Assembly (NCBI GenBank): GCA_025594325.1
Contig: JANHCV010000008.1
Location: 1 to 64,000 of the forward strand
Length of the DNA: 64,000 nt
Source of the DNA: Blastocladiella emersonii ATCC 22665
Taxonomy: Eukaryota; Fungi; Blastocladiomycota
Direction: 5' to 3'
Shown here: in pieces, positions 24,072 to 50,348 of the stretch
Numbering within the stretch: the stretch's first letter is position 1
How the letters are laid out: every line of letters begins with the position of its first letter
The notes under the pieces: generated by a model
What the model was told of the DNA's origin: nothing
The model's database searches: none
The model's input: only the letters and a program-made list of their open reading frames with translations
Position numbers and translations under genes: made by a program

Positions 24072-24224
24072 GGAGTGTGCGCGTGCGGTGCATGGGCGTG
24101 TGCGACGCCTGCGGTGGTCGTCGTGAGGGCGGAGCGAGGCTCGTCAACTTGAGGGCCGCGCTGGCCCGTTCCCTTCTCTCCCCGCGCGGACCCCAATGTA
24201 ACTTTGAATGTAAAGCACATGAAC

Positions 24225-25959: not shown

Positions 25960-26401
25960 AGCGGCGTCGAGCAGGACGTCAAGCGTCGGCTGGTGTCGGG
26001 CTGTGTGTCGAGGTGTTCGTTGCATCAAGGGCGACGGAGGCCCGCTCTTCCCATCATGGACCTCCCCACCGCAACGAATAGCATCATGAAGTCGTCTACT
26101 TGTTGCATTATGTGATTCATCAGGTTTCCGACAGCGCACCGCAGTTGCTGAGGAGAATCAGGCGGACAGGTCCAGCGAGAAGTCGGCGCGCACAGCGGTC
26201 GCCGTGGCCGGAACTTTGACGTGCCGCTGACGCTTGTCGTCGCGGTTCGCTTGACGGTGCCGGAACGAGGATACGTTCGAGCGAACCTTCCGACTCAGCA
26301 TGTACGGACTGTTGTCCGCGGAACCGGCTCGTATAAGAGCGCGGTCGTCCTGGCGCTCCCTCGCCCAGTCGAGCTTCAACACGCATCCTCAACCCCCAGC
26401 C

Positions 26402-28169
26402 ATGGCAGTCCTCTCGACAACCGCCCTCTACGTCGCGCTGCCGTCGCTCGCGCGCGGCGTCGTGTCGACGCTCCGGCGCCCTACCCCCGCCCTTGGCGCG
26501 TGGCTCGCCGTAGCCCTCCTCACCCTCCCCATCACCTTCTCCGCGGTCCAGTTCGCTCTGGTCGTCGTGCAGCGCAAGTGGTCCGCCCGCCGCGGCCTGT
26601 ACATCACGTCGCGCGACGGCACGCGGCGCCCGGTTCCCGGACTCCTCGACGCCAGCTACGTCGAGCGGTACCTGACGGGGGACACGCGCAAGATCCTCGC
26701 CGCGCCGAGCCTCGTCGTGTACCAGCAGCAGCAGATCGCCAAGTACGGCACAGTGCACACGCTGCGCGACCCCGGCGGCGCACCCGGCGTGGTGGTCGCG
26801 GATCCGCGCGCGCTGCACTACCTGTGCACGGCGCGCGCGTACGCGACCGTCAAGCCGCCCGAGCTCGCGCGCCTGTTTGTCTTTGCCGGCGGGCAGGGCG
26901 GGATGCTGGCGCTCGAGGGCGACGCGCACAAGGTGCACCGCCGCGTCGTCATCCCGCTGTTCAACATGAAGGTGCTCAAGCAGCTGGTCCCGACGATGCA
27001 CGCGGCGTTCGACGAGCTCGAGGCCATCCTCGACCGCGTTGCCGCGGCGGGCGAGAAGTCGGTCGACTTCCAGGACCTCGCGACGCGCGTCACGCTCAAC
27101 GTGATCGGGCGGACGGCGCTCGCGACCGAGTTCGACGCGCTGCGTCCGGGCTCGCCGTCGACGCTGACGTCGTCGTTCGCGTTCCTCATGCGCATCTTCG
27201 AGTACTCGACGTGGAACTTTGTGCGCGACGCGCTCCCGGTCCTCACGTACCTGCCGCTCCCGTACAACCGCAAGCTTTGGGCCGCGCGCGCCGTCAACTT
27301 TGACAACGTCGACGCAATCCTGCGTCGCGTCGCGTCCGAGCGCGCTGGTGGCGGGCGGCCGATTTCGGCGGACGCGGCGGCGGCGCCGTCGATGCCGCTG
27401 TTCACGGCGTTCCTCGATGCGGTCGACGGCAGCAACGGCTCGCTGACGCTGCACGACATGCGCGACGAGCTGCTCACGTTCCTCGGCGCCGGCCACGAGA
27501 CGTCGTCGAACCTGCTCGGTATGCTCGGCTACTTCCTCGCCAAACATCCGCGCGTCCAGGCCAAGCTCGCGGCGGACGTGGATGCGTTCGGCGTGGATAG
27601 CGCGTATTTGGGGGATGTCGTCAACGAGGCACTGCGCGTGCACTCGCCCGCGTACTCGACGATGCGGCTCGCCGCCGAGGACCTGCAGGTGCCGCTCACG
27701 TCGGGCGAGACGCTCCACGTTCCCAAGGGCCTCCGCCTGTTCTACCCGATCGTGCGTGTCCTCTCTCTCCTTTGGACCTGCACCATCGCCATCGCTGACA
27801 CTCCCTCGTTGCGGCCGCCCGTAGCAAGCGATCCACACCAACCCCGAGCTCTGGGGCCCGGACGCGCACGAGTTCCGCCCGGAGCGGTGGTCGGACGAGG
27901 TGCACGTCGCGACGACGCCGACCGAGACGTTGCCCGCGGGCAAGTCGCGGCTGATCCCGCCGTACGGCTTCTACCCGTTCCTCGGCGGCCCGCGCGCGTG
28001 CATCGGGCGCGCGTTCGCGATGCTCGAGATCAAGCACTTTGTCGCGCGGCTCGTGGCGCGGTACACGGTGCGGCTCGCGGATCCCAAGTTCGTGCCGACT
28101 ATCGAGTACAAGATCAACGCGCGCGCGACCGAGGTGCCGCTCGTGTTCGCGCGGCGCGACGGGGTGTAG
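26402..28169 (+). CDS. Cytochrome P450 (paralog D)
   Basis: MAVLSTTAL start, AGHETS, EALR, FRPERW and FLGGPRACIG motifs. One intron after YPI. Confidence 0.92.
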
Positions 28170-32282: not shown

Positions 32283-32849
32283 CTACTTGCTCGTGAGCGA
32301 CTCGATGACAGCAGTCTGCTCGGCCTCGACCTTGGCGTAGGTCTCGTACTGCGCGGTGAGGCGGTCGAGCTGCATCTGGCGCTCGCGCAGGAGGAAGCTG
32401 ATGCGGTTGAGCTCGCTGACGCGGCGTGCCGGTTCGCGCTCCACGGCCGTCCGCAGGGCCACGGCGCGCCGCTTCTCGCGCTCAATCTCGGCCGCGCGCG
32501 ATGTCACGGCCGTCAGTAGATCCGATACGAGCGTGGTGAACTCGCTGACCTCTACACGTGCGAGCGGAGAACTGGGTCAGGGGCTCTCTCAGTCGGCGGT
32601 GCGTTGGAGAGCGGACGGACTCGACGTCAGGTCCCGGCACTCCTCCTTGAGCTTCTCACTGGCGTCCGTGGTCGCGGGCGGGACCAGGCGCAGCTTGCCG
32701 AACTCGTCGAAGGTCACGGACACGGGGCCGCTCGCCGCGTTGCCGCCGAGGAGCGACGAGGACGCGGGCGTCATGCCGCCGCTGCCGCCCGCTGGGGCGC
32801 CGGCCGGGCGCAGGTTGGCGAGACTGCCGGAAGTCGCGGTCGAGTACAT
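32283..32849 (-). CDS. IFT20: Intraflagellar transport protein 20
   Basis: VTFDEFGKLRLV...LKEECRD, an intron at about 32552-32620, then EFTTLVSDL...EIEREKRRAVALR...YETYAKVEAEQ. This matches the IFT20 pattern. Confidence 0.88.
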
Positions 32850-33358: not shown

Positions 33359-33432
33359 TATAAAAGGAGCGCGGATCCCCGCCTCGTTGTGCTGCTCGTC
33401 ACCAAAACCAAGAGCGCCCTTGCACTGCAACG
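33359..33432 (+). promoter_or_regulatory. TATA box (TATAAAAG) and ACTGCAACG leader motif of pseudo-metacaspase 1
   Basis: TATAAAAG at 33359 and ACTGCAACG at 33424, upstream of the ATG at 33449. Both elements recur upstream of the two paralogs. Confidence 0.5.
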
Positions 33433-33448
33433 CAACACAACAAACACA

Positions 33449-34690
33449 ATGCCCAACTCCGCTGCCGTCTGCATCGGGCTCTCGTACCCGACGACGCACT
33501 CGCCCCTCCCCGGCGCCGCCGTCGACGCCAACACCATGTCGTCGGTCGCCGCGGGCATGGGCATGGAGGACATCCAGACCATCACCGACGCGGACGCGCC
33601 CGTGACGCGCGAGCAGGTTCTCGGCAGCCTGCGCGACCTCGTGCAGGGCGCCGAGTCGGGCGACACGCTGCTCTTCTCGTTCTCGGGCCGCGGCACGACC
33701 GTCGCCGACACGAACAGCGACGAGACGGCGGGCGGCAAGTTCGACGAGGCGATCCAGTGCGCCGACGGCGTGGTGACCGACGACGAGATCCGCGCCGTTC
33801 TCGGGGACTTGCCCGAGGGCGCCAACCTCATCATGGCGTTCGACTCGACCAGCTCGGGTTCCATGGCCGACCTCGACCTCGCGGGCGCCGAGATCCCGGG
33901 CAACGTGGTCGTGCTGTCGTCGTGCGCCGCCGACGGGACCGAGGTCGCGCAGTCGTCGGCGGCCGGCGGCGCCTTCACCAACGCGCTCGCCGAGGTGCTC
34001 GCCGCCAACCCTGGCATTACTTGGTCCGACGCCGCGGCGCTCATGGACCAGGCCGACGGCAACTCGGGCCAGACGGCGAGCGTGGCCGCGAACCGCGCCG
34101 AGCTGCTGTTCGAGCCGGCGTTCGCGCCGGTCGAGGACGTGGCGCGCGACGCTAACGCCGACGCCGAGTCGGCGACCATGGGCGGGGCGAGCGCCGTCGG
34201 GTCGGCGATCGCCGTCGAGACCATCAACGGCAACGAGGTGACGATCGAGCGGTTCGAGTCGGGCGCCGAGATCCGCAAGGCCTACACGGACGGCGACGGC
34301 GTGGCCAACGTGGTCGCGTACGTTTCGGCCGACGGGTCGACGACCATCGAGGCCGATCGCACGGGCGACGGGTCGCAGGACTTCTCGGCGCGCATCGGCG
34401 CTGACGGGACCGTCACCATGGCCGCGTACGACGTGGACGGCGACGGGTACTACGAGACGCAGCTGCACACGGCCGAGGACGGGTCAACCACGGTCGGCGT
34501 GTACGACCGCGACGGCAACATGGTGCAGAACCTCGACACTGACGGCGACGGGATCGTCGACGTCAAGGCCGACGCGAACGGCGACGGGATCCACGACATT
34601 GGCCCCGGCCTCGACCTCGCCGCCATGACGCTGGACGGCGCCGCGACCGTTGGGCTCGGCGAGTCGCCGTACGGCGACGGGTGCTGCTAG
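33449..34690 (+). CDS. Catalytically inactive metacaspase-fold (C14) protein with C-terminal Dx[DN]xDG repeats (copy 1)
   Basis: p20- and p10-like segments (AVCIGLSY, GDTLLFSFSGRG, FDEAI, VTDDEI, FDSTSSG, VVVLSSC, GGAFTNAL). The His site reads R and the Cys site reads T. The acidic tail has DVDGDG and DTDGDG and ends GCC. Confidence 0.8.
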   Translation: MPNSAAVCIGLSYPTTHSPLPGAAVDANTMSSVAAGMGMEDIQTITDADAPVTREQVLGSLRDLVQGAESGDTLLFSFSGRGTTVADTNSDETAGGKFDEAIQCADGVVTDDEIRAVLGDLPEGANLIMAFDSTSSGSMADLDLAGAEIPGNVVVLSSCAADGTEVAQSSAAGGAFTNALAEVLAANPGITWSDAAALMDQADGNSGQTASVAANRAELLFEPAFAPVEDVARDANADAESATMGGASAVGSAIAVETINGNEVTIERFESGAEIRKAYTDGDGVANVVAYVSADGSTTIEADRTGDGSQDFSARIGADGTVTMAAYDVDGDGYYETQLHTAEDGSTTVGVYDRDGNMVQNLDTDGDGIVDVKADANGDGIHDIGPGLDLAAMTLDGAATVGLGESPYGDGCC

Positions 34691-35428
34691 ACTGCGCCCT
34701 CGACTTGTTTGTGAATATACCTACTCTTCTCTGGCTCATCACATGCGACTTGTTGGTTTCGTGAACACACCGTGCTGTGAGGTGACAGCCGCGAACACGG
34801 CCGTGGCCGCGGACTGTTCCTCGCTCTCCGCTCCCATCGCGATGCACTCGAATGAAGCCTTTCCCATGGATCTCAGTTGATGCAACATGAAATACACAAC
34901 CTCTTCCCTCTAAGTATCGATGTGACCACGCGAGGCTGTGCAAAGTGCAACGAACTCGTCGACGGCAGGTTCGCGGCAGCCGTGAGCGATCGGGCCCATC
35001 TTCCTTGCATTATTGATCGTGTACGCCGGCACCACATCAATCCCGCCCAGAACCTTCTGTTCGGTGCCCATGACGCGACGCGGCACGCCACGCAACACGG
35101 CCTTGCCGTCGTGCGGCAGGCACTACATGCGCGGCACCGGCTTCAGCCATGACCGAGGCCGACGCCCGACTGGGCACTTGCGTGTCTTCTCGGAAATCAT
35201 GCATTGAGACGGACTGCGCTCGCGAACGAACGGATCTCTTGGTGCGCTCGCTCCGGTTGACGGATCCGCGGTCCTGAGCGGTGCGCGCGTTCCGTGAACG
35301 AGGCGATCTCTCACCGACCTTGTGTGGCTGGGTCCTACAAAAGCTTCGCGAAGCTCCCATCCGCCTTGCTCCATCGCCTCACATCCTCTCTCCACTGCAA
35401 CGAACTACCACCACCAACACACACAAGA

Positions 35429-36745
35429 ATGCCGTCTGCCGCAATCTGCTACGGCCTGTGCTACCCCAACACCGCCGTCCCCACGCCCGGCTGTGACGTA
35501 GACGCGGCGACCATGTCGGGCGTTGCCGCGGGGATGGGCATCGAGGACATCCAGACCATCACCGACACGGCCGCGCCCGTGACGCGCGAGCAGGTTCTCG
35601 GCAGCCTGCGCGAGCTGGTGGCGCAGGCCGAGCCGGGCGACTCGCTGCTCTTCTCGTTCTCGGGGCTCGGCAGCCAGCGCACCGACACGTCCGGCGACGA
35701 GGCCGGCGACGGCTACGATGAGTTGCTGGTGACCGAGACGGGCGCGGTCACGGACGACGAGATCCGCGCGGTCCTCGCCTCGCTGCCCGCGGGCGCCAAC
35801 CTCGCGCTCGTCCTCGACGCGTCCAACTCCGAGTCCATGGCCGACCTCGACCTCGGGGGTACCGAGATCGCGGGCAACGTGGTCGTCCTCGCGGCGTGCG
35901 CGGCGGACCGCCAGGCGGTCGGGGACGCGGCCGGCGGCCGATTCACCAACGCGCTCGCGGACGTGCTCGCCAACCACCCGGGCATCTCGTGGGGCGAGGC
36001 CGCGGCGCGCATCGACGCAGCCGACGGTAGCAACGACCAAGTCGCCAACGTCGCGGCGAACCGCGCCGAGCTCCTGTTCGAGCCCGCGTTTGCGCCGGTG
36101 CAGGCGCCTGCGACCGACGCGGACGCGGACGCGGCGAGCGGGTTCGACGCGGACCCGAGTAGCGACGTGGCCAAGGCCGAGGCGGCTCTCCGCGCGTCGA
36201 ACGCCGCGACGGACCCGACGGTCACGCGCGAGCGGCTCGGCATGGACGACTCGCTCGAGGTGCAGCAGTTCGCGTCGGGCGGCGAAATCCGGACGTACTT
36301 TGACGGCGAGGTGGCGGCGGCGAAGGCGGTGGTGGCGGCGGACGGGTCGGTGGTGCTCGCGTCGGACTCGACGCACGACGGGGTCATGGACACGGTGGCG
36401 CGGTTCGACGCGGCTACGGGCCACCTGCAGACGGCGGCGGCGGATCTCGACGGCGATGGGTTCTTCGAGACGCAGCTTGTGGAGCAGGGCGCGCGCGCGT
36501 TCGCCGTGTACGACGCGCACGGGAACGTGGTGCAGGAGGTTGACGCAGACGGCGACGGGTTCGCGGACGCGGACGTCGACCTCGACGGCGACGGGTTCGC
36601 GGACGCGGACGTCGACCTCGACGGCGACGGGGAGGTCGACATGGCGCAGGGGTTTGACCTGCAGAAGGCGGCGTACCTGCCCGCGCTCAACATGGACGCG
36701 GGCGAGCCGGATCTCGGGTACTCGGCATTTGGGATTGACGGGTGA
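35429..36745 (+). CDS. Catalytically inactive metacaspase-fold protein with Dx[DN]xDG repeats (copy 2)
   Basis: Tandem paralog with FSFSGLG (His to Leu), LDASNSE (Cys to Ser), GYDELL and TDDEI. The tail has several DxDGDG loops. Confidence 0.8.
   Translation: MPSAAICYGLCYPNTAVPTPGCDVDAATMSGVAAGMGIEDIQTITDTAAPVTREQVLGSLRELVAQAEPGDSLLFSFSGLGSQRTDTSGDEAGDGYDELLVTETGAVTDDEIRAVLASLPAGANLALVLDASNSESMADLDLGGTEIAGNVVVLAACAADRQAVGDAAGGRFTNALADVLANHPGISWGEAAARIDAADGSNDQVANVAANRAELLFEPAFAPVQAPATDADADAASGFDADPSSDVAKAEAALRASNAATDPTVTRERLGMDDSLEVQQFASGGEIRTYFDGEVAAAKAVVAADGSVVLASDSTHDGVMDTVARFDAATGHLQTAAADLDGDGFFETQLVEQGARAFAVYDAHGNVVQEVDADGDGFADADVDLDGDGFADADVDLDGDGEVDMAQGFDLQKAAYLPALNMDAGEPDLGYSAFGIDG
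36548..36631 (+). repeat. Perfect 36-bp intragenic tandem repeat (2 full units plus a 12-bp partial) encoding DGDGFADADVDL
   Basis: GACGGCGACGGGTTCGCGGACGCGGACGTCGACCTC occurs twice in tandem, followed by GACGGCGACGGG. Confidence 0.9.
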
Positions 36746-36869
36746 GTAGTGCGATATTATACAACTCGCTGTGATTTTTCTCAATCAAAGCAACGAGCGA
36801 GGAGGTGACAATGGTGGTATATTACACTAGCAGGCGACGAGCGCGGAGCGACGGAAACGCGTCGCGTCG

Positions 36870-37750
36870 CTACTCGTCCTTCTTGGCGGCGCGGGGCGGC
36901 AAGGGGAAGAAGATGGAGGTGCGGGCCTTGTATTCCTGGTACTCCTTGAGGTGGCCGTAGCGCTTGTCGGCCGAGTTCTCGAGGAGGCGGACGCCCGAGC
37001 CAAAGTAGAGGAGCAGGGTGACAAAGACCGGGGAGAGCACGGCGACCCAGTTCCAGGCGTCGACAAAGCCGCTGGCGCACAGCAGGAACATGCCGTACCA
37101 GAGGGTGACCTCGCCGACTAGTTTCAGGGGTGGCAAGGTGAGTGACGAGATCGAGGGCGTGGGAACGCGAGGAAGAGGGGGAGCGTACAGTAGTTGGGGT
37201 GGCGCGAGTAGGCCCAGAGGCCCGAGGTGATGAACTTGGACGGGTTGGCGTTCTTGAAGGTGTTCTTCTGGTGGTCGGCAATGGTCTCGATGGCGAACCC
37301 GGCGACCCAGACGGCAGCGCCGACGGCGTCGAGGGCGTTGAGGTCGGGCATGCGCGAGGCGGGGTTGGTGGCGACAATGTAGACGGCGAGGCCGGTGAAC
37401 CAGACCCAGGCGGTCTGTGCGGTGAAGGCGAAGAGGAAGCGGACGGGCGAGGTCTTGATGTCGTCGAAGCGGTGGTCGTGGCCGGCGCGGCGCACGCGGC
37501 GGAACAGGAACAGGCCGAGGCGCGAGCACCACACGAGCGACAGGGCGGCGGCGGCGAGCTGGCGCGGGTGCAGGTCGGCGAGCGACTCGGCGGCGGGGCG
37601 GTCGAGCAGGGCCGTGGCGAAGCACGCCGTGTAGGTGAGGGCGCCCGACAGGTCGTAGAAGTGCTCGGTCTGCAGCGGGGCCGAGAAGGCCCAGGTCGCG
37701 AGCTGGATGCCCGCGTCGATGACGAAGACGAGGAGGAGGCCGCCGAGCAT
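36870..37750 (-). CDS. DUF1295 / steroid 5-alpha-reductase-like polytopic membrane protein
   Basis: FYDLSG, RLGLFLFRR, DHRF, FAIETIADHQK, FITSGLWAYSRHPNY/FGE and LLENSADKRYG motifs. One intron within NY-FGE. Confidence 0.85.
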
Positions 37751-38044
37751 CGTCGTTACGTTCGATCCGTTGGTTTTCGTGTGTTTTCGTTCCCTTTGAG
37801 GGAGCGCGGACGCGCGGCGGGTACTTGTAGTCGTTGCGGGCACTCGCCGGCGTGGATTACATGTCCATGAGCAAGCTGCTCGGGATGGTGACGGAGCGCG
37901 AGCCGATCGCCCGCGCGCAGCCGTCGCGCCGCGCCGCGCCGATGCCGAGCGGACGGTGGCGCCCATGTGGTGGCGCACCCCTCTCCCCTCGCTGACACAC
38001 GCGGACGGATGTCAAATGAATACAGGATCTATTGTTTATTGCTT

Positions 38045-39613
38045 CTACTCATCGTCCTCGTCCTCATCGTCCTCGTCGCCGTCGCTCACGCCCGCGTCGA
38101 TCCCGACCCACCCGGCCGTCGTCCCGCCGCGCACCCGCCGCCCGCGCGGCAGCTTGTGCACCACCTCGTCGTCGTTGCCCGTGAACGCCGTGTGCACCCC
38201 ACTGTCTTTCGCTGCTGCCGCGACCGCCGCCGCCGCCGCGCCCGTCCGCGTCACGGCAGGCGGCGCGATGAGCTCGGGCACCGCGACCGCCGCGCGCGGG
38301 ATCGCCGAGAGGTTGCCCTGCAGCCGCGCCCACCGCTTCTTGGTGATCACCGGCCGCCGGTCGCGCGTCAGCGCCGCCGCGATCTCGGCGTCCGTCGGGT
38401 ACTTTGCCGCCGCCGACTCGCTGCCGCCCGGCAGCGCGCCCGACTCCATCATCACGTAGCGCACCATCAGCCGGCACGAGTGCGGGCCGAAGATAAAGTA
38501 CGACTTGTGCTTGGTCGCCGCCGCCGCCGCCGCCGCTGCGCTGCCCGCCGCGAATGCCGAGTGGTTCGGCAGCGGGACCATGGTCGTCGCCGCACTGGCG
38601 CCGCGCACCTGTGCCCGAAGCGCGCGCCGGCTCGGTGACGGCTTCCCGCCGCTTCCGCCGCGCGGCTTACGAGCCGGCTTGGCCGAGGCGACCGGCGGCG
38701 ACGGCATCGCGAGCGCGTTAACGAGCGGCGACAGGCCCGACTCGGCCGCGGGGGCCGCAAACTGCGCGAACGCCGCCAGGTCGAGCGGCGCCATGGGCGG
38801 CAGCTGCGGCGCGAGCATCGAGCCCGGCGCGTCCGCCGCCAGCGCCCACGGCGAGAGCGACAGTGACGCCGCTGGGACCGACGCGGGCGAGACCACGGGC
38901 GACGAGTGGTGCAGGTGGTGGTGGGGGTGGTAGTTGTTGGGCGGGAACGGCGCGCAGCACGCGCACCCTGGACCGCTGGCGCTGCTCATGGCGTCGTGCG
39001 GCCCGTAGTACTGGTGCTGGTGGTGGTGGTGCGGCGGGTACCGGTACCGCGACTGCGGAACGTGCCGCGCGTGTGCGTGGTGAGGGTGCGGGTGGTGGTG
39101 GAGCGGCGCGCGCTCGTACGGGTGGTACCCGTGGTAATGCCCGCCGCCGCCGCCTGACGCGCACCCGTGCGAGTGCTGGCACGAGCAGCACGCGTGCGCC
39201 GGGCCGCCGACCGACGGCGGGCTGCCCATGGCCGACGCAAACGGGTCGACGAGCGAGCTCGCAGCCGTCGCCGCCGAGTCGAGCGGGTACACGTTGCCGT
39301 GCGACGAGTGCTCGAACGGCAGCTGCTGCTGGACCTGCGGCGTCGGCTGCTGCCAGTCGAACGTCTGCCACAGCGACGACGCGGCCGACTTCGCGTGCAG
39401 TTGCTGCTGCTGCTGCGGGTGCGAGTCGACGCCCGCGGTTGCCGTCATGGACACGGCTGGGTAGTTGACGCCGGGCGAGATCGCCGTGAGCGGCGGCAGC
39501 GGCGGCGGCGCAAGATGCACGTCGCCGCCGCCCAGCTGCTGTTGCTGCCACGACGCGAGCTCGAGCTCGGCGGGCGACGGCAGCACGAGGCCGCGCTTTC
39601 GTTCCCAACGCAC
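38045..39613 (-). CDS. Hypothetical low-complexity Gln/His/Pro/Ala-rich protein (start uncertain)
   Basis: 522-aa ORF with biased codon usage, poly-Q and poly-H tracts, a small globular-looking segment (KSYFIFGPHSCRLMVRYVMME) and an acidic tail. Confidence 0.5.
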   Translation of the reverse strand: MRWERKRGLVLPSPAELELASWQQQQLGGGDVHLAPPPLPPLTAISPGVNYPAVSMTATAGVDSHPQQQQQLHAKSAASSLWQTFDWQQPTPQVQQQLPFEHSSHGNVYPLDSAATAASSLVDPFASAMGSPPSVGGPAHACCSCQHSHGCASGGGGGHYHGYHPYERAPLHHHPHPHHAHARHVPQSRYRYPPHHHHQHQYYGPHDAMSSASGPGCACCAPFPPNNYHPHHHLHHSSPVVSPASVPAASLSLSPWALAADAPGSMLAPQLPPMAPLDLAAFAQFAAPAAESGLSPLVNALAMPSPPVASAKPARKPRGGSGGKPSPSRRALRAQVRGASAATTMVPLPNHSAFAAGSAAAAAAAATKHKSYFIFGPHSCRLMVRYVMMESGALPGGSESAAAKYPTDAEIAAALTRDRRPVITKKRWARLQGNLSAIPRAAVAVPELIAPPAVTRTGAAAAAVAAAAKDSGVHTAFTGNDDEVVHKLPRGRRVRGGTTAGWVGIDAGVSDGDEDDEDEDDE

Positions 39614-40295
39614 ACGTCCGTCGCTTGCTTTTGGATCCCGAGACCACGATCTCGGGGCTCAGATGCGACCTTACGAAGTACTCTACGCGAAGCTGCAGCT
39701 GCACGGCCGAGCTGCGCGTCAAGTGGACTACACGCTCCCTCGAGGAAGCTTCTTCGATGCTACTATTAGACATTGGAGGCTTTACTCGGCTTCACACAGC
39801 GATGGATGGGCACGGTCGGCAACCAGCGGCGCTGCCTTGCGGGGAGCGCATTCACACGCATTGCTCTCCGGATCGGCACACCCTGAGCTGCGGGAGTCCT
39901 CAACGGTGGCCAAATCCTGCTTAGAGATCCAGGATTTCCGTCCGCGAAGAGCAACGCGATCGCCGGCACGGTGGCTCGAGCATGAATGGAGGACGCCTCG
40001 CGACCGTCAGCTGCACGGAGCGGGTGGTAAATTCTACCGCTCTGGAAGTCGACGAGGCACTCAGTCGGCATTATATTGCAAGAAGTTAGGTGTCCATTCG
40101 CTGGCGTGGTGTGTGCGTTCCGAGGCGCAAGCGAGAGGAGGAGGTGTCTCGCGCACACGTGATATCGGAACGCGTCGACATCGCCGTCGAGTCGGGCGCG
40201 CTGGGCGCGCGTCTCGCGCCAAGTCTCCCTGTTCGCGTCAGGCTCTCGCAAGCTTACCTCACGCGCACGGTTTGTAATCTGGAACTAGAATGAAA

Positions 40296-40700
40296 TCAAT
40301 GTATTGAGCTCTCGCCGAGATCCACTGCTCGCTGCCCTCCACCCGCGTCGCCTTCGCCGCCCTTGCTTGCGCTCGGATCAGCTTCGTAACGCGGCAGCGC
40401 GTCCCACCCATCGTCATCGTCTCGCACTAAATCGTCGAGCATGTTGCGGGAAACAACAGGGTGGAGTACGATGCCCCGCTCAACCACCGCCGCCACGTCC
40501 GACGGCATCGCAGAGAGTGCAGCGCGGTCGCACAGCCGACGGCAGAGGTGCACGGCGAGCGGCGGGCCGACCACGATCACGGCGAGCAGGGCGAACAGGA
40601 AGTAGGTCCATGGATTCTCGATGGCCGACGGTCTGGTGCTGTCCGCGGTGCGCAGGCCGCGTGGAATGGGGCCGTCAGAGCGTGGGATGAGGCGGAGCGA
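40296..40700 (-). CDS. Single-pass membrane protein with LPRY motif (copy 2; 5' end unresolved, possibly degenerate)
   Basis: ENPWTYFLFALLAVIVVGPPLAV...VVERG...WDALPRYEAD aligns with 30011..30811. The upstream part does not align cleanly. Confidence 0.45.
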   Translation of the reverse strand, partial: SLRLIPRSDGPIPRGLRTADSTRPSAIENPWTYFLFALLAVIVVGPPLAVHLCRRLCDRAALSAMPSDVAAVVERGIVLHPVVSRNMLDDLVRDDDDGWDALPRYEADPSASKGGEGDAGGGQRAVDLGESSIH

Positions 40701-41036
40701 AGTGCACGACGGTGGACAGGTCGAGCAAGACAGGAGCGTCGCTTCCGTGTATGCGAAGTGGTGGGAAGCGAGACGCGCCGCGCGCGCGGCTCCGCCGAAC
40801 AGCAAGCTTTGGATGACGTGGCAAAGAGATTGCAGCAAGTAATGCGTAAAGCTATTCCATGAGATACATGCTAAGCGATGGGTGCGGGTTGAAGGAGAGA
40901 GAGAAAGAGCGACACGCGCGGCGCGTTCAGCCCAGCAGCGTTCAGCCTGTGCCACGCGCCGCTTCCGCCCGCTCGCGAAGGAGCACCAACTAGGCAGTGA
41001 TTATCGATTTGATGGTGGTTTGGATACATGGGTTGT

Positions 41037-43072
41037 TCACACGACACCAACGACGAGGACGACGACGACGCGGCGGCGCTGGATGTGCTCGTGATGACGG
41101 CGGCGGTCGAAGCCGAGCGCCTGGCCGTGTTCATGTCGCGCGGCACGGTCGGCAGCAGCGTCGCGGCCCTCTTGGCCACGTCGGCGAGCGCCATGCCGAT
41201 CGCGTGTGCGTGCGTCGCAGCAGGCCCCGTCGGTCGGCGACGGTGCGCGAGAGACGGAGCGGGCGCCAGCAGCTCTACATGGCGAGCAGTGAGTGGTGCC
41301 GATCTGGAGTAGGGAAGCGACTGAGGAACGCGTAGCAGGCGCACCGGCGGGCGGGTGCGCGCACATCAGGTGCGGACGGGCCGTGTGGTCTTTGGCGCCG
41401 GCGTTGGACTCGTCGGGGTGGCGGATGGTGATGGTCGCATCAACGAGCGGCATGCGCTCGTCCCACACCGCGACCGCAAGCGGCGACTCGGCCGGTAACG
41501 CGTTGACGCCGTGCAAGACCGGGATGAGGTATAAGTCGCTCTTGCCGCGGCCGCACGACCCCTGGTACGCGTCCGACACGACCCCGTTCATAGACCCGGT
41601 GCCGTGGCGGGCTGGGACGGCGTGGCCTTGAGGAGCAAGAGCCTAGCGCGCGCCGAGAGGTTGAGTGGATCGCGGCACGGATGATATCGCGTGCGACCAG
41701 GCGCGACGCGATGTTGATCTCGCCTGCGCCGATCTCGGTCTCGCCTGCCAAATTCTCGACCTTGACGTCGCGTACCGCGTCGATCCGCACCTCGCCGACG
41801 TCGCGCAGGTACATCAGCCAGCGGTCACGGCGCGACGCGGCGGGTTGCGCGGCGGGCTGCGCGCCGAGCTCGTCGTGCTCAGACACGGTGGCGCGGCGCT
41901 GCTGGAGCTTGGTCTCGACGTCGTCCTGCGCCTGCCGCTGCCCTGCGGCGTCCTGCAGACCTTCCAGTACGAGCGCGACCCGGACGCGGTTGAGCTGGCC
42001 GAGTACAGGACTCGAGATCCGCGTGGCGGGCTGGGTCACTTCGCCCTCGACGGCGAGCAGCGGGGGCTCAAGGGCAGTGGCGTGGTGGGCAGCGGAAGAT
42101 TGTCGGCGAGATCAGGGGCCACCGCTTGATCACGACGGGTTCGGTGTCCTTGAGGCGGCGGATGCACTCGTGGCCGTACCCGACCTCGAGGACGAAGTCG
42201 CGACAGGCAGGGTTTCTTGATCACGTAGGACTTGGTCGTGCCGCCGCGCGAGTTGATGACGGACGTCGTGGAGCCGTAGACCTCGTCGTCGGGCGGGGGC
42301 ATGTCTTCAAGAGCGACGAAGCGCTCTTCGAGCCGCTGCTGGTTCTCGGGCCTAGCAAGACGCACGGCGGGCTCGCGCGGGGCCGCGGAGCCGTCGTCCA
42401 GATGGAAGCCGTCGGTTATCGTGTCGCATCCGAGAATAAAGCCGTAGATGTTCGAAAACGCGTTCTTCTGCACAACCGTGCTGAGCCCGAGTTGCGCTGA
42501 GATTGAGAAGCGGCGCTGGAGCGCGACGTGCGGCGTATTGGTGCCGTCGGCGCGCAGCGAGCGCAGATTGCCGACGCCATCCTCGCACACGGCGCAATTG
42601 GTGCCGTGGACGACCTGCTCCTTGTCGGCGATGAACCCGTTACTGTCGCTGTGACGGGCACCCTCGTACTGCGGGTCGCGCACCACCTCGTTGCACTGGA
42701 TCAACGGACACGACGCCGCGCTCCTTGATTCGCACGAGCGGCACAGTAGCGACTAGCTCGCGGTCCTCGACCGTCCACAAGCGCCGCGACGGCGCAAGCT
42801 TGGCGAGGACGCGCATCGAGTGCGTTCGCTACAAGTCGACGGTGTTGTTGTCGTGGCCGACTAGGGCGAGGTATATGCGCGGGTCGGGCGCGTGGAACAA
42901 GCCCTCGATCGCGACGGCGAGGGACTCGAGCCGCGGCGGACGGCCCCGTGCCGAGCGTCGCGTTTCTCCAGAGGAAGCCGCATAGCTTCTCGCGCGTCAT
43001 GAGCTCGCGCTCGGTCAAGATCTTAGCGAGGTGGCAAGCGTTGCGGCAGCGGAGGTCCGAGGTGGTCATGGT
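41037..43072 (-). pseudogene. Heavily disrupted gene of unrecognised family
   Basis: Consecutive minus-strand segments with GC3-rich, protein-like codon usage switch frame about 5 times and include an in-frame TAG. No family recognised. Confidence 0.35.
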
Positions 43073-43514
43073 CATGGCCATCGCGGCCGCACGCGTGGTT
43101 CCGCGGGCCAGCGTGCTGTAGACGTCGTGACAACATAAATGCAGCAACTGAGCTAGTGGTTCGGTTTCATTAAATACATGGTAGGTGGCGACGCAGGTTA
43201 GAGAAGGGTAGAGGATAGGGAGAAGCGACGCTGAGAGACGCGTCGGTTGGCTGGTCGCTGAGGTGGCCGCCCGCTCGCGACGCCACTACGCCAGGTCGGT
43301 GCCGACCTCACCACTTCTGATTTCTCGCCTGAAGGAGCGAGCGAGGCGAGATCCACTATAAACGATTCCATTTACTCGTCGGATAGAGGGGCATAGCGGC
43401 CGGAGACAAAGAGAGGGTAAGGGTGAACAAGAATCATCATTCCATGATACTGGGCTCATAGGATCGACAGGGAGGGTGATGGAAGATACGAAGAGGGTGC
43501 GGGGGACGCCGTAT

Positions 43515-44013
43515 TTAGGCGAACTGCTTGGAGAACTGGCTGCAGGCCGAAGCAAGGGCCTCCTCACTCGCGGGCGAGAGCTGGCCCTCCTTGCGGATGG
43601 TGGCGAGGAGCTCGGCATGGTTGGCCTTGATGTAGGGCAGGAAGGCGGCCTCGAACTCGGTGATGCGCTTGACGTCGACGCGGTCGAGGTGGCCCTTGAC
43701 ACCGGCGAAGATGAGGGCGACCTGCTCCTCGACGGCGAGGGGCGAGTACTGGGGCTGCTTGAGCAGCTCGGTGAGGCGGGCGCCACGGCCGAGGAGGAAC
43801 TGGGTCGACGCGTCGAGGTCCGAGCCGAACTGGGCGAAGGCGGCAACCTCACGGTACTGGGCGAGGAAGAGCTTGAGCGAGCCGGCGACCTGGCGCATGG
43901 CCTTCTGCTGGGCAGCGGAACCGACACGGGACACGGACAGACCGACGTTGATGGCGGGGCGGATACCCTTGAAGAAGAGCTCGGCCTCGAGGAAGATCTG
44001 GCCGTCGGTAATG

Positions 44014-44044
<31 letters not shown>

Positions 44045-45875
44045 CATCACCACCCTGGGTCTCGATGACGGGGAGGGCGGTCAGGGAGCCGGCGCCGAAC
44101 TCGTCCGACATCTTGGCGGCGCGCTCGAGGAGACGCGAGTGGAGGTAGAAGACGTCACCGGGGTAGGCCTCGCGACCGGGGGGACGGCGGAGGAGGAGCG
44201 ACATCTGGCGGTAGGCCACGGCCTGCTTGGACAGATCGTCGTAAATGATGAGGGCGTGCTTGCCGTTGTCACGGAACCACTCGCCCATGGCGCAGCCCGA
44301 GTAGGGGGCGAGGAACTGGAGCGGGGCGGCCTCCGAGGCGGTGGCGGCAACGACGATCGAGTACTTGAGCGCGTCGTTCTCCTCGAGCGTCTGCACGAAC
44401 TGGGCCACGGTCGAGCGCTTCTGGCCGACGGCGACGTAGACACAGTACAGCTTCTTGGCCTCGTCGGCGCCCTCGTTCCAGCGCTTCTGGTTGAGGATGG
44501 TGTCGAGGGCGACGGCGGTCTTGCCGGTCTGGCGATCGCCAATGATCAGCTCACGCTGGCCACGGCCGATGGGGACCATCGAGTCGATGCACTTGAGGCC
44601 GGTCTGCATGGGCTCGTGGACCGACTTGCGGGGGATAATGCCGGGGGCCTTGACCTGGACACGCGACGACACGACGTTCTTGAGGGGACCCTTGCCGTCG
44701 ATGGGGTTGCCGAGACCGTCGACAACGCGGCCGAGGAGGCCCTCGCCGATCGGGACGTCGACAATCTTGCCGGTGCGCTTGACGGTGTCGCCCTCCTTGA
44801 TGAGGCGGTCGTTACCGAACACGACGACACCGACGTTGTCGGCCTCGAGGTTGAGGGCCATACCCTGGTAGTAGTGGTCACGTGGAGTGGGGGTGAGCGG
44901 GCTGATCAACAAGTTTTTTTCGCCCCACCCACTCTGACCGCAGCCAGAGCGGGCGAGCGCGACGCGAGCTCCGCCCAAAAATTGCGTACCTTGATGCCCG
45001 ACGAGAACTCGACCATCTCCTCGGCCTGGACGTTCTTGAGGCCGTAGACACGGGCGATACCGTCACCGATCGACAGGACGCGGCCAGTCTCCTGGACATC
45101 GACGTTGGCCGACGAGCCGAGGATGCGGTCCTCGAGGATCGACGAGAGCTCCGAAGCGCCTATTTGGGGGAAACAGTCAGATCGAGGTCGGGCGATCGTG
45201 GGCGATAACGGGCGCAAAAAAACGTACCGGGCTTGGCCGCGGCGCTCTTGAGAGCGACGTTGGAGAAGGCGCGCGAGGCGGGGCGCGCCTGTAGACGGGC
45301 GAGAGGATCGGGGGTCAGTGAACACGTTCGTGCGGTGGGTGGGGCGGGAGGGCGGGCGGGATGAGGGGGATGGTGGGTGCGGCCCTCGTCGTCAGTCAGC
45401 GTCGTCGTCACCGGTGCGGGTCGCCGCTGGCCGAGCTGCTCGAGGATGGTGGTCGCGGGCGGCGAGCAGGGCGATCGAGGTCAAACGGGCAGCGAGCCGA
45501 CAGACTCGGCGACAACCGACGACCGCTGCTGCTCGAGCCCGAGGTCGATCGGTGCGATGCGGCTCGAGTCGAGGTGCCACACAGCGCGGCGAGGCCGGGC
45601 CCGCGCGTTGGTCAGAGCCCGCGAACATGTTGTCGAAGGCGAGCGAGCGACGACGACGACGACCAGGACCGCGATCGCTCGCGCGCACCCTCGCGGAGGC
45701 GGAGCGGGTGGCGCGGGTGCAAGGGCGAGCATGCGCGGCAGGCAGGCAGGCAGGTGGGCCGCGCGTGACGACGACGAAGACGACGAGGGCGGGGTGCGGG
45801 CGAGGGCGGGGGCGCTCGCGCAGCGACACGTACGTAGGCGGCGCGGGCGGCCGAGCGAACGACGGTGCTGAACAT
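43515..45875 (-). CDS. ATP1: Mitochondrial F1 ATP synthase subunit alpha (nuclear-encoded)
   Basis: Presequence [14 protein letters not shown], then [15 protein letters not shown], the GDRQTGKT Walker A motif and [21 protein letters not shown]. Three introns, the first at 45289-45833. Confidence 0.97.
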
Positions 45876-46313
45876 GGCGACGAAGTGGTGGTGGACGACG
45901 GCGACGGGAGCGAGGGCCAGGTCGCGGAGGCGGAGGGGAGAAGAGCGGGGCGGGCGAGGGCGGGGGCGCGTGCGGGCGGGCGGCGTGTGCGAGTGCTCTC
46001 GGGCCGGCCAACTCGGCGAAGAACGGCTCGCTCTGACCCAGAGGGAAAACAAACCGGGCGAAAACCGCGGTCCAGTGGACTCACATGCGCGCCCAGCCAC
46101 CGCCCGACAGCCGTGGCACCCCCCGGTTTCGCGGGTTCGCGTCACCTGACCCGCCCCGCTTCCGCCCGCCCGCACGTGCCGCCGCGCGCGAAAAAAGTGT
46201 CTCCCGTCTCGCCCGCCGCCTCCGCGGTCGGACGCGCCGCGCGCGCGTCGCTTCGCCGACGCTCTCGCTCTCGCCTGCCCACACACCTACACATTACATG
46301 CAACGCAATCACC

Positions 46314-47613
46314 ATGGCGCGCGATCCCGTCGTCGCCGCTAAACCGCGCCACTCGGGCACGCCATCCTCGCGCGCCGGGTCGGGCACCGCCACCCCGCTC
46401 GCCACCACCTCCTGGGCCACCGCCAATGCCGCCACCAAGCGCGCAACCGCCACCGCGTCGCCGCCCGTTCGCTCGACGCCCTCGCCGCGTGCCGCCGGCG
46501 GGGGTGCACGGCCAGCGGGTGCTGCGCTCGGATCCGCGGGCGCCGCCTCGCGCAAGCCCGCTGTCGCCCCTTCATCCCGCACCACCGCGACGCGTCCCGC
46601 AGCCCGCAACAGCGCGCCCGCCGGCGCAACCCGTGCGCGCGAGCAGGCGCGGGCCAACCCGCTGCAGCACGAGGTGCACATCTACATCCCGCCTATCCCG
46701 CAGGACCCGTTCGACGAGTCCGTCTACAACCTGATCCCGATCGCCATCACGCCGCCGCCCAAGCCGCCGCGCCACGTGTCCAAATTTGCCGGCATGGCCC
46801 GCACCGAGTACCGGTCCGGCGTGAAACCCATGGCGTCCATGGGCCCGCTGCGCGTCGTGAGTTTCGGGCCCGAGCGGTTCCTCCGTAAGGGCGACGGGGA
46901 GAAGCTCAAGGTCGAGAGTACGTGTCTCTTTCTTCTCGCGCGCGCTGATCGTTGCTTGACTCACCTCGCCATGCGGTAGTCCCCAAGCACCAGCCCGACC
47001 GCACCACGCGCAAGGCCCCGCTGCCCGACGAGCCGGGTAACATCCCCGGGCCCTCGGGCACCGACTTCATCAAGCTCAACCGCGCCACCATGGCCTACTC
47101 GGGTACACTCTCACTCGTTCTCATTCTCGCAACGCGTCGCTGACCCACCCCCCGTAAACGTAGAACCGCCGGCCCCACCCGCGCCGCCGCGCAGCTTCCT
47201 GCGCAAGGCCAACTACGGGCGCAACCCGACGTACCTCGACCACCGCAAGGAGGAGGCCGAGCTGACGGCGCTGCAAGCCGAGATCGAGGCGCACGAGCGC
47301 GCCGCGCACGGGCCCAACGGCCTGGGCAACAACGAGCTGGTCCCGCTGCCCGAGGACGAGCGCAAGCACATCCTCGACGGGCTCAAGGCCAACTGGGAGA
47401 AGCTCAACTCCGAGTACCAGAAGCTTTCGCTCACCGTCGACACGGTGCCCAAGATTGCGCGGTACGTTCCCCTGGTGGTGATCCGTCGCGGGTTCGGCTG
47501 CTCACCCGCACATCCGTGTCTGTAGCAAGGTCAACATGGAGCAGCAGCTCAAGCGCATCGAGGAGGACATTCTGCGCTTCTCGCACGAGAACATTTACGT
47601 GCGCTTCGAGTAG
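46314..47613 (+). CDS. ENKUR: Enkurin (flagellar microtubule inner protein)
   Basis: ESVYNLIP...KPPRHVSKF, YGRNPTYL, LPEDERKHILDGLKANWEKLNSEYQKLSLTVDT and KVNMEQQLKRIEEDI motifs. Three introns. Confidence 0.85.
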
Positions 47614-47920
47614 CCGCCCTGCTCGGCCGCCCGCTCCTACACCATTCATCTGCCGTTGTTTCCTTCCCTCTGACTGACGCGGGGCCTTTCCATACCCGCC
47701 CGCCGCCCTGCCTGTAAATATAAACCCCGACGCGTCTCTGCCCAGCCATGTCATGTCTCGCGCCTGAGACGCGCCGCGCCCTGCGCCGCGCCGCGCGCGT
47801 GGTCGCCACCGCGGCCAAGTCCCGCACGTGCGCCGCCGCCGATCCCTCCTCTCTCTCTCACCTCCTCGAGCAGACCCTGCAACGCATCAACACTAGCTGC
47901 AACAAACGCAAACAGACATC

Positions 47921-48643
47921 ATGGTTGTCGCCCTGTACACGCGCGCCCTCGCCAAGTACCCGATCACGACGCAGTCGGGCGCGACCGGTCCGGCTCACCC
48001 GCATCTCTTGCTATCATGACCGGCTGATGATCGGCCCGCTGATAATGTACTGGGCGATCCTGTCTAGCCGTCTTGTTCGCCGCCGGCGACCTGATCGCGC
48101 AGCAGGGCGTCGAGGGCCGCGGCTGGGCCAAGCACCAGTGGGACCGCACCGCGCGGTACGCCCTCTCACACAACCCGCGACGGCGCGCGCTCACGCCGTT
48201 TGCGCGAACCTAGCATGTCCGCGTTCGGCTTCTTCCTCGCAGGCCCAGCGCTCGCCAACTGGTACCGTTTCCTAGACCGGCGCGTGACCATCGCGCACCC
48301 GGTCGGCAACCTCGCCGCGCGTGTCGCGCTCGACCAGTTCGCCTTCTCGCCCGTGTCGGTCGCCACCTTCTTCTCCGTCAACAGCCTCATGGAGGGTCTG
48401 TCGGTCGACGAGACCCGCGCCAAGCTGCGGCAAAACTACTGGACCGCCCTCGTCAACAACTGGAAGGTCTGGATCGGCGTCCAGCTCGCCAACTTCTACT
48501 TTGTCCCCGTCAACCACCGCCTGCTCGTCGTCAACACGGTCGCCCTCGGGTGGAACGCGTACATGTCGACGCTCAACGCGGGTAAGGTGGAGGAGGTCGA
48601 GGCCGAGAACGGGATGGTGCTCGCGGTCCCCGCGGACAACTAG
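47921..48643 (+). CDS. SYM1: Mpv17/PMP22 family membrane protein (Sym1-like)
   Basis: YTRALAKYPITTQS, LFAAGDLIAQQ, RVALDQFAFSP, NWKVW and ANFYFVP motifs. Two introns. Confidence 0.9.
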
Positions 48644-49180
48644 GCGGCGCTGTGTCGGCGTCGGAGAGAGTCTTGGGCGTGCGATCCATATATGTGTCAT
48701 CCTTACCCGCTGCTGCTCCTGCGTCTACCTCGCGCGCTCGACGAGCGCAGATCATCCTCCTCGCGTCGTCGTGTGCACCTCTCGCCCGCGCCAAGGTCAA
48801 CGGAAGACCCGCTCGACCCACACCGTCTTCGCGGCCATGACAAAGACGTCATCGCGCCCAGGCCTCGCACGCGGGGCTCGCGACGCGCACGATCAGTTCG
48901 CGGTCCTGGGCGTTGCGCGCCGGCGCTCGCCCACCGCGCCTTCTTGACGTCGCAGGGAACGCGTTCATCGCGCATGCTCGCGATGGTGGACTTGATGCAA
49001 TCGAATGGACCTACTTCGCGGCGGAGCTCGGCGCGCAGCGTTGCTGTCCCAGCAGGACCTGCTCGTGCTCAAGTGCCGCGACGCGAGCGCAGTCAGGACG
49101 CACCGCTCACTCACCTCAGTACCAGCATGATCGAGTTGAAAACGTATCGTAACGTGTATTGAGGGCAAGAACAAGGCGGC

Positions 49181-50348
49181 TTAGCAGCAACCACTGTCGC
49201 CGAAATCCGCCGCGCCGCCCGCATTCGCCGCGTCCAACTCGGACTGCATCGCGTCCATGACCTTGGGCATGTCGTAAGTGCGCAGGGCTTCAGACATGAG
49301 CTTCCCATCAAACACGCCCTCGTCGACCGTCCCATCGCCGCGCGTGGCGACCGACGCGTCCACAACCCCGTCCGCGTCGCGGTCCTCGAACACGTTCGTC
49401 CACACGCCCGTCGGCAGGTTCTCCGTGACCACGAACCGCTCGACCACGCCGTCCGCGTCGAGATCCTGCGCGACCACCGTCGTCGAGTTCACCTCGTGCG
49501 TGACGACCTCGGGCCGCCCGTCCTGGTCGGCGTCCTCGCCGTACGCGTACGGCGTGCCATCCGGCGCCAGCAGCGCCGCGCGGTCAGCCACGCCGTCGCC
49601 GTCCTCGTCGCTGGCGACGACGTGCAGCCCGGGGCCCATCGTCGCCGACTCGTCAGTCGCGGCGTCGCCGGACCCGCCGCCGTACATGGGCTGGAACAGG
49701 AGCTCGGCCCGGTTCGCCGACGCGACCGCCACCGGCTGCTCCGTGGCGCCGAGCTGCGCGTCGATCGCCGCCGCGACGTCGGACACGGTCATGCTCTCCT
49801 CGCGGAACACGGCGGCGCGGAACGCGGACGTGAACGGGCTGCCCGTCGTGTCCCACTCGACGCCCTCGGGCGTCACCGCCGCCGCGGCCGCCGCGGGGAT
49901 CTCGCCCGTCGGCGCGAGCGTGACCACGTTCCCCACGAAATTGGCCTCGGACAGCATGAGCGGGTCGCCGTTCCCCGCGGCGATCGTGCCGGGCGTGTCG
50001 ATGGTCATGGTCAGGTTGGCGCCCTCGGGGAGCCCCGCGAGGATCGCGCGGATCTCGTCGTTGTTGATCACGCCGTCCGACACCTGCATGAGCGCCGTCG
50101 AAATGTCGGCGCCCGACGCGCCAGAGAAGGAGAAGGCGAGCTGGTCGCCCGGCTCCGCGGAATCGACCATGTCGCGCAGCGCGTCCAGAACGGCCGCGCG
50201 TTACCGTGGCGCCGTCGGCGTAGGTCAGTGTGGCGATGTTGTCGAAGCCCAGGCGCGCGGCCACGTCAGCCATGGTCGCGGCGTCGGCCGAGTTGGCGGT
50301 CGCGTCGCCCGTGTTGATCCCGATGCAAATGGCCGAGGACGCGGGCAT
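49181..50348 (-). pseudogene. Inactive metacaspase-fold protein with Dx[DN]xDG repeats (copy 3), frameshift near 50195
   Basis: MPASSAICIG start; the frame breaks at ACG CGC G GCC GTT (paralogs read TREQVL). Downstream it has FSFSGASG, NNDEIRAIL, ANRAELLF and DEDGDG/DADQDG/DLDADG loops, ending GCC. Confidence 0.65.

Follow-up and report, generated by a model that had tools for sequence, protein, structure and literature searches.

The first 64 kb of contig JANHCV010000008.1 of the zoosporic fungus Blastocladiella emersonii ATCC 22665 (the window; about 67% G+C), a source with which the names of identical or near-identical database proteins agree, contains three related genes for metacaspase-like proteins with an acidic C-terminal tail, referred to here as copies 1, 2 and 3 (Table 1). 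Copies 1 and 2, which are uninterrupted reading frames on the same strand with 741 nt between them, encode members of the C14B (metacaspase) fold and homology group without the His-Cys dyad of the active enzymes, and are probably functional pseudoproteases. Copy 3, on the opposite strand, is broken at the DNA level and is probably a decaying pseudogene. All three belong to a family of at least 27 paralogues in B. emersonii, in which dyad-intact and dyad-less members occur with the same architecture. An original prediction made from the sequence of the window had given the start positions and motifs of the three copies exactly, and had correctly described the loss of the dyad with a different substitution in each.

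Both copy 1 and copy 2 match the Peptidase_C14 family (PF00656) above its Pfam gathering cutoff of 21.4 bits, with scores of 55.5 bits (8e-15) and 45.1 bits (1e-11), respectively. A profile of 13 paralogues, searched against solved structures, retrieves metacaspases at 8e-24 to 4e-18, including Candida glabrata MCA-I (CgMCA-I), Yca1, Geobacter GSU0716, Arabidopsis MC9 and MC4, and Trypanosoma brucei MCA2 (TbMCA2). In an AlphaFold2 model of copy 1 (mean predicted local distance difference test score, pLDDT, of 80), residues 1-225 score mostly in the 80s and 90s, with two loops lower, and a Foldseek search with this model gives GSU0716, CgMCA-I, TbMCA2, Arabidopsis MC9 and Yca1 as the top matches, with a probability of 1.0 to metacaspase structures. 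The protein consists of the C14 domain (1-225), a disordered acidic linker (about 226-252; pLDDT below 50), a hairpin sheet (252-361), a helix (390-400) and a terminal Cys-Cys; at an overall predicted template modelling score (pTM) of 0.56, the mutual placement of the C14 domain and the tail is not defined. In copy 2, the linker is longer and DxDGDGxx[DE] loops number four, with one unit, DLDGDGFADADV, present in duplicate. The complete fold that had been proposed for all three copies thus holds for copies 1 and 2, and fails for copy 3, which is split between frames and can be assigned to C14 only via its paralogues (tblastn to P0011, 6e-55).

The dyad columns of the family alignment are occupied by His and Cys in paralogues P0002, P0004, P0006 and P0007, by Arg and Thr in copy 1 (motifs SGRG and DSTSSG), by Leu and Ser in copy 2 (SGLG and DASNSE), and by Ala and either Ile or Thr in copy 3 (SGAS and DTPGT). 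The prodomain is absent in all copies, as had been foreseen; the start codon sits about 90 nt after a TATA-like box, and the protein opens in strand β1 (MPNSAAVCIGL). Comparable boxes precede the start codons of copies 2 and 3 and of paralogues P0004 and P0008 by some 85-95 nt. The p10-like part comes second, some 15 residues beyond the p20 part, and none of the marks of the type I, II and III classes (prodomain, long p20-p10 linker, and p10 before p20, respectively) is found.

Much of the remaining metacaspase machinery is retained in copies 1 and 2. The Ca2+ ligands of CgMCA-I (Asp198, Asp214, Asp215 and Asp245 in author numbering), which correspond to TbMCA2 Asp173, Asp189, Asp190 and Asp220 (PMC9622860), were transferred via profile alignment to CgMCA-I, and all four are kept in these two copies, as the D of FDEAI or YDELL, the DD of TDDEIR and the D of ADLD, in line with the conserved acidic Ca2+ site expected there. 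Copy 3 lacks two of the four, namely the first aspartate and one member of the DD pair. Asp95, Ser156 and Asp211, the S1 residues proposed for TbMCA2 (PMC4357240), have counterparts in all three copies by alignment: the Asp in (C)xxDA, the Ser in SGxG, and the Asp found two positions ahead of the Cys column.

The tail was modelled alone, using an alignment with 11 paralogues. In the model (pLDDT 86.5, pTM 0.79), ten antiparallel strands form an open sheet; they are joined in alternation by turns of five residues (xxDGx) and loops of nine (D-x-[DN]-G-D-G-x-x-[DE]), which places the acidic loops along one edge. A helix follows, and then a floppy end finishing in Cys-Cys. Loop counts were compared with 5000 composition-matched shuffles. 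Strict D-x-[DN]-G-[DN]-G-x-x-[DE] loops number 3, 4 and 1 in the tails of copies 1, 2 and 3, against about 0.003 per shuffled tail (the observed count is reached by 0/5000 shuffles for copies 1 and 2 and by 10/5000 for copy 3), while the looser D.[DN].[DN]G pattern occurs 3, 6 and 4 times, against about 0.1. The D and G columns of the loops are invariant across the 11 paralogues. The acidic hairpin tail with DxDGDG loops is thus as originally described, and on sequence grounds it fits a repeated, conserved array of DxDxDG calcium-type loops that would bind Ca2+.

The further description of the tail as a 'calcium blade' does not agree with the model, which remains an open single-layer hairpin sheet; a β-propeller of the FG-GAP type was rejected on this basis, with propeller matches scoring a template modelling score (TM) of 0.2-0.25. 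The matches from fold searches with the tail are single-layer sheets of engineered OspA, MORN repeats, and predicted proteins of bacteria labelled DUF6802, EF-hand_5 or FG-GAP, at TM of about 0.45-0.58. An EF-hand is not indicated either: the loops are flanked by β-strands in the model, and Pfam EF-hand matches are below the cutoff and confined to paralogues. In the Atlas, the tail has as its neighbours bacterial proteins that carry EF-hand, FG-GAP or DUF6802 labels, and a profile of the tail retrieves proteins from bacteria that are about 270 amino acids long and built of like hairpin-plus-loop units, with E-values down to 1e-21. These proteins are Arg-rich (14-16%), and look secreted, judging from hydrophobic N-termini that resemble signal peptides; one of them adjoins ExbB-ExbD-TonB genes. 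Their likeness to the tail lies in large part in the motif itself, and common descent is not claimed. Within the family, paralogue P0021 alone passes the Pfam threshold for DUF6802 (31.2 bits). In this protein of 845 amino acids, encoded on another contig, the dyad-less C14 domain precedes a Pro-rich PGFPQP repeat, and a longer hairpin-loop domain then occurs in two copies, with 10 DxDxDG loops.

A profile was run exhaustively against 1.8 billion representatives and yielded 16,170 C14 matches, in which every fusion of C14 to the hairpin tail is from B. emersonii. The prodomain-less C14 domain also occurs, without the tail, in Catenaria anguillulae and in the chytrid Dinochytrium. In a maximum-likelihood tree of 49 C14 domains, computed with the two dyad columns removed, 36 zoosporic-fungal sequences form a clade (support 100/99). 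A tailed clade of nine (99/95) contains the four dyad-intact paralogues (P0002, P0004, P0006 and P0007) and two separate dead lineages. The first of these is (P0003,(copy 1, copy 2)), with copies 1 and 2 as sisters (96/89), and in it Cys was lost first, P0003 still keeping His, and His later; the second is (P0008, P0009). P0003 and P0008, in which His is kept and Ser stands in the Cys position, the configuration of T. brucei MCA4 (TbMCA4), appear to represent halfway stages in the loss of the dyad. Copy 3 falls in a separate, wholly dead clade of seven, on an end branch of 1.12, compared with 0.08 for its nearest relative P0011. Over the whole tree, the dyad state changes at least seven times. 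The zoosporic-fungal clade lies nearer to short metagenome-derived homologues than to fungal MCA1, with weak support (86/75); together with the motif-driven similarity of the tail, this node hints that the C14 clade or the tail came from bacteria, an origin that is not established.

Two claims of the original prediction need revision in this light. The three genes do not form one unit, since copies 1 and 2 are tandem sisters and copy 3 belongs to a different dead subclade; and the family is not a 'pseudo-metacaspase system', since it mixes live and dead members. The four dyad-intact paralogues carry an equal tail, equal acidity and Lys depletion, and the C-terminal Cys-Cys, and for this reason the tail, acidity and Lys depletion are regarded as traits of the family, and not of the pseudo-enzymes. 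Net charge is -55 to -63 in the three copies and -40 to -76 in the tailed members. The predicted Lys poverty is borne out, with 0.5-0.7% Lys in the three copies and 0-0.7% in the tailed clade of nine, against 5-6% in fungal MCA1 representatives. Both traits extend across the whole clade, live and dead, in Blastocladiella and Catenaria. Lys depletion may plausibly protect the proteins from the family's own Arg/Lys-specific cleavage.

The C-terminal Cys-Cys is present in copies 1 (...GDGCC) and 3 and in eight paralogues, and is absent from copy 2. A hidden terminal exon that would supply it in copy 2 was considered and dropped: the stop codon overlaps a GTGAGT, and the downstream frames yield no such end. 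Cys-bearing C-termini are also seen in tail-less relatives, comprising Catenaria P0026, P0030 and P0038 and B. emersonii P0040 (...CDGCNDGLMIM, ...CQDVGHVC, ...CDCDC and ...DDCCC, respectively), and a C-terminus of this kind may be older than the hairpin tail.

In copy 3, homology runs through the first 51 codons and then shifts frame, with the remaining 329 codons running to 49181. At the junction, VTR is followed, one base out of register, by AAVLDALRDMVDSAEPGD, which is the family's conserved helix, placing the lesion as a 1-nt frame offset near 50195-50200. The public model P0016 spans the break by a 52-nt GT-AG gap, and thereby deletes the conserved helix. A real intron at this place was judged unlikely: read in another frame, the gap codes for sequence conserved in the family, and it is without a CTAAC branch site, while the genuine introns of P0008 and P0009 are 83-106 nt long and have the form GTACGG...CTAAC...TAG. 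An assembly error is likewise unsupported, since contigs of three DNA runs, all from one sample that is possibly the source of the assembly, match the region without an indel. Copy 3 is probably a decaying pseudogene because the frame break lies in the DNA, the gap is poor as an intron, and no indel is found in the runs.

Public gene models depart from the expected N-terminus in two other members. For P0009 (L007:5916-6000), an upstream ATG (MPSLS...) is out of frame with the conserved YCVGLNYPGTE; the public model begins further in, at an internal Met, and so omits strand β1, making P0009 a second dead member with a frame break. For dyad-intact P0002 (L005:5918-6000), the public start is 87 nt late, and an in-frame ATG at 5918 restores the N-terminus MVNAAVCFGLNY... 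and the full length.

To the following explanation of copies 1 and 2 we give an even chance: they would be non-cutting partners, decoys or scaffolds of the live paralogues that share their tail, binding Ca2+ and basic ligands, and acting at the membrane in the case of those members that keep the Cys-Cys. The ancestor of the two would already have been without the nucleophile when the tandem duplication took place. Both copies probably bind Ca2+ and basic-residue ligands, leaving the latter uncut, because the fold, two pocket aspartates and four Ca2+-site aspartates are kept. Copy 1 may be tethered to the membrane through acylation of its terminal Cys-Cys. Ca2+ binding by the tail, lipidation, contact with the active paralogues and any role in the zoospore are what we infer, and are not among the observations.

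This explanation supposes that copies 1 and 2 are maintained, which is at issue between it and neutral birth-and-death, under which both would be redundant duplicates drifting, like copy 3, to pseudogenes with no function of their own. Neutral decay is a serious contender, though we consider it distinctly the less probable. The family readily loses its catalytic residues, as the recurrent changes of dyad state show, and other dead members are visibly decaying, with frame breaks in copy 3 and, as a 5' frameshift, in P0009. Several further observations weigh against the explanation given above: the terminal Cys-Cys is lost in copy 2; a search for RNA runs listed none; and the DxDGDG tail reaches Pfam FG-GAP and DUF6802 only below threshold in the three copies (DUF6802 at 25.7 bits in copy 3, against a gathering cutoff of 27 bits, and at 14 bits in copy 1; FG-GAP at 11-13 bits). 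Absolute ratios of nonsynonymous to synonymous substitution (dN/dS) are high throughout (0.55-0.76, with 0.58-0.76 counting towards decay), and the agreement between dead and live pairs might also reflect weak constraint on the family as a whole. By the method of Nei and Gojobori (NG86), the C14 domains of copies 1 and 2 give a dN/dS of 0.58, compared with 0.55 in the live pair P0002/P0004 and 0.56 in P0008/P0009; G+C at third codon positions is 96% in copy 1 and 93% in copy 2, lowering synonymous divergence and inflating simple dN/dS genome-wide, and at such values absolute ratios are hard to read, so that dN/dS is used here solely as a comparison of dead with live. In this comparison, the dead pair shows no extra relaxation. 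Copies 1 and 2 have diverged to about 53% amino-acid identity (about 47% divergence) with their frames still full length, and the lengths of their end branches (0.28 and 0.31) are inside the range of the live paralogues (0.08-0.32), unlike the long branch of copy 3. They are read as probably functional because the frames are intact despite this divergence, the mapped non-catalytic residues (the Ca2+-site and pocket aspartates, and the invariant residues of the tail loops) are kept, the branches are live-like, and TATA-like boxes are present.

Two further alternatives accept that the copies function, and assign them another role. As stand-alone cytosolic Ca2+ buffers or sensors, binding Ca2+ through both the tail and the C14 site and working independently of active metacaspases, they would make direct use of their strong negative charge, the 3-6 DxDxDG-type loops that each tail has beyond chance expectation, and the retained C14 Ca2+ ligands; the bacterial proteins labelled EF-hand, FG-GAP and DUF6802 among the Atlas neighbours of the tail fit the same picture. 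We nevertheless hold this role to be improbable: dyad-intact paralogues have an equal tail and charge, which therefore did not evolve for a protease-free role, and buffering alone leaves the whole C14 fold and the S1-pocket aspartates unexplained. Cryptic catalysis, in which substitute residues such as Ser or Thr in the Cys position would cut, takes its appeal from the Ser of copy 2 and the Thr of copy 1, and from P0003 and P0008, which keep His with such a Ser. It is very hard to credit for copies 1 and 2, in which the His general base is also gone, replaced by Leu and Arg, respectively, and TbMCA4, which has His plus Ser, is without detectable activity (PMC3220528). At the time of that study, no caspase-fold protein with a Ser nucleophile was known.

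A broader scheme can also be drawn, which we offer as speculation that is unlikely to hold. Live and dead metacaspases would form a membrane-tethered network, in which the hairpin sheet, possibly acquired from secreted bacterial proteins, serves as a cytosolic Ca2+ switch; copies 1 and 2 would gate or redirect the live members in Ca2+-controlled stages such as sporulation and zoospore germination, and the scarcity of Lys and Arg would prevent the family from cutting itself.

The genomic setting gives little indication of partners. The neighbours of the copies, including P450s, IFT20, a DUF1295 gene, ATP synthase, enkurin and Mpv17, show no consistent linkage across the paralogue loci, and were dropped as candidate functional partners on that account; scans of the window for tRNA and Rfam families gave no matches. 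The DUF1295 gene (Pfam 1.2e-13) adjoins copy 2 and has a faint precomputed match to isoprenylcysteine methyltransferase, and an open reading frame fragment beside P0002 (L005:4520-4876, minus strand), with a precomputed match to Pfam Prenyltrans (PF00432), resembles a protein prenyltransferase beta-subunit. The occurrence of such prenylation-type neighbours beside a family with C-terminal Cys-Cys is probably a coincidence, the other paralogue loci being without them. Genes for two flagellar proteins, IFT20 and enkurin, also lie near the copies, and linkage is unsupported here too. Of three tandem cytochrome P450 genes, the model of the first also has G-patch and GCFC matches, and may be a merged gene model.

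Table 1. Coordinates of the three metacaspase-like copies and of associated and neighbouring features in the window.
Feature	Position	Strand	Description
Copy 1 (P0001)	33449..34690 (413-codon frame 33449-34687)	+	Metacaspase-fold pseudoprotease without prodomain
TATA-like box of copy 1	33370..33390	+	TATAAAAG, upstream of ATG
Copy 2 (P0005)	35429..36745 (438-codon frame 35429-36742)	+	Tandem sister of copy 1
Copy 3 (public model P0016, 371 aa)	49181..50348 (ATG 50348)	-	Frame-split, dyad-less, terminal Cys-Cys
52-nt GT-AG gap of public copy 3 model	50153..50204	-	Codes AAVLDALRDMVDSAE helix in another frame
DUF1295 gene	36873-37625	-	Adjoins copy 2
IFT20	32283-32849	-	Flagellar-protein gene
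Enkurin	46314-47613	+	Flagellar-protein gene
Cytochrome P450 genes	~23449-28169	+	Three in tandem

Pseudo-proteases that regulate active relatives are a recurring theme, as in cFLIP, and TbMCA4 is one example from among the metacaspases. Natural families with many live and dead members of one architecture are rare and useful. Here, several independent losses in one genome have left about a dozen paralogues without the dyad beside at least four that keep it, all with an equal tail, and this provides a comparison set for the role of the metacaspase fold once cutting is lost. The tail would itself be a compact and confidently modelled candidate for a new kind of eukaryotic intracellular Ca2+ module, formed by an open hairpin sheet in place of an EF-hand, C2 domain or propeller. 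A practical caveat is that B. emersonii is not a routine genetic system.

Pseudo-metacaspases and pseudo-orthocaspases are already known, and fusions of C14 to other modules are common; the combination of C14, hairpin-loop tail and Cys-Cys end is apparently new, as had been supposed, with no paper or database entry found for it. Searches of the literature gave no description of this combination, and returned nothing relevant on Blastocladiella metacaspases or on metacaspases with FG-GAP; databases that cover blastoclad genomes thinly gave no other organism that has it. The copies resemble Yca1, CgMCA-I and GSU0716 (PDB 3bij) in their C14B fold, the GDExDGxDE/DDE/DSCxSGxxxDL signature, the Ca2+-site aspartates and the acidic S1 pocket. 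Unlike type I fungal metacaspases, they have no Pro/Gln-rich prodomain and no long p20-p10 loop, and the dyad is missing in all three. Bacterial pseudo-orthocaspases are likewise described as dyad-substituted C14 proteins that keep an acidic specificity pocket (PMC6426788), but they are prokaryotic, with a characteristic Tyr/Ser substitution, no p10-like region and other partner domains.

The tail has its closest parallels in bacterial FG-GAP, DUF6802 and 'EF-hand-loop' proteins (P0165-P0167, P0051 and P0149), which consist of repeated hairpins with D-x-D-G-D-G-x-x-[DE] loops, and its shape matches DUF6802/EF-hand_5 clusters at TM of about 0.56. These bacterial proteins are not joined to C14, and FG-GAP of the integrin type closes into a propeller, in contrast to the open tail model. 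A precedent for the C-terminus is found in Yck1 and Yck2, which are likewise soluble cytosolic proteins with a ...GCC end; Yck2 ends in ...LGCC, and both of its cysteines are palmitoylated, forming a plasma-membrane tether (PMC3145546). The Yck2 signal also requires Phe-Phe and the kinase domain, and acylation of the B. emersonii proteins is a candidate modification suggested by their C-terminal residues.

The comparison with T. brucei MCA1 and MCA4, made at the outset, is apt, as these also have a metacaspase fold in which the nucleophile or the whole dyad is substituted, and occur alongside active paralogues. TbMCA4 is a Cys-to-Ser metacaspase with undetectable activity, which is dually acylated, located at the flagellar membrane, and processed by the active, palmitoylated MCA3 (PMC3220528). 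The setting is similar: B. emersonii, too, is a flagellated organism, and a candidate acylation site stands at the C-terminus of most family members. The two differ in that MCA4 is acylated N-terminally (myristoyl plus palmitoyl) and has no repeat tail, whereas the B. emersonii copies are without an N-terminal extension and have a C-terminal Ca-loop hairpin domain, which ends in Cys-Cys in copies 1 and 3, but not in copy 2. The T. brucei and B. emersonii pseudo-metacaspases are of independent origin, in different C14 lineages.

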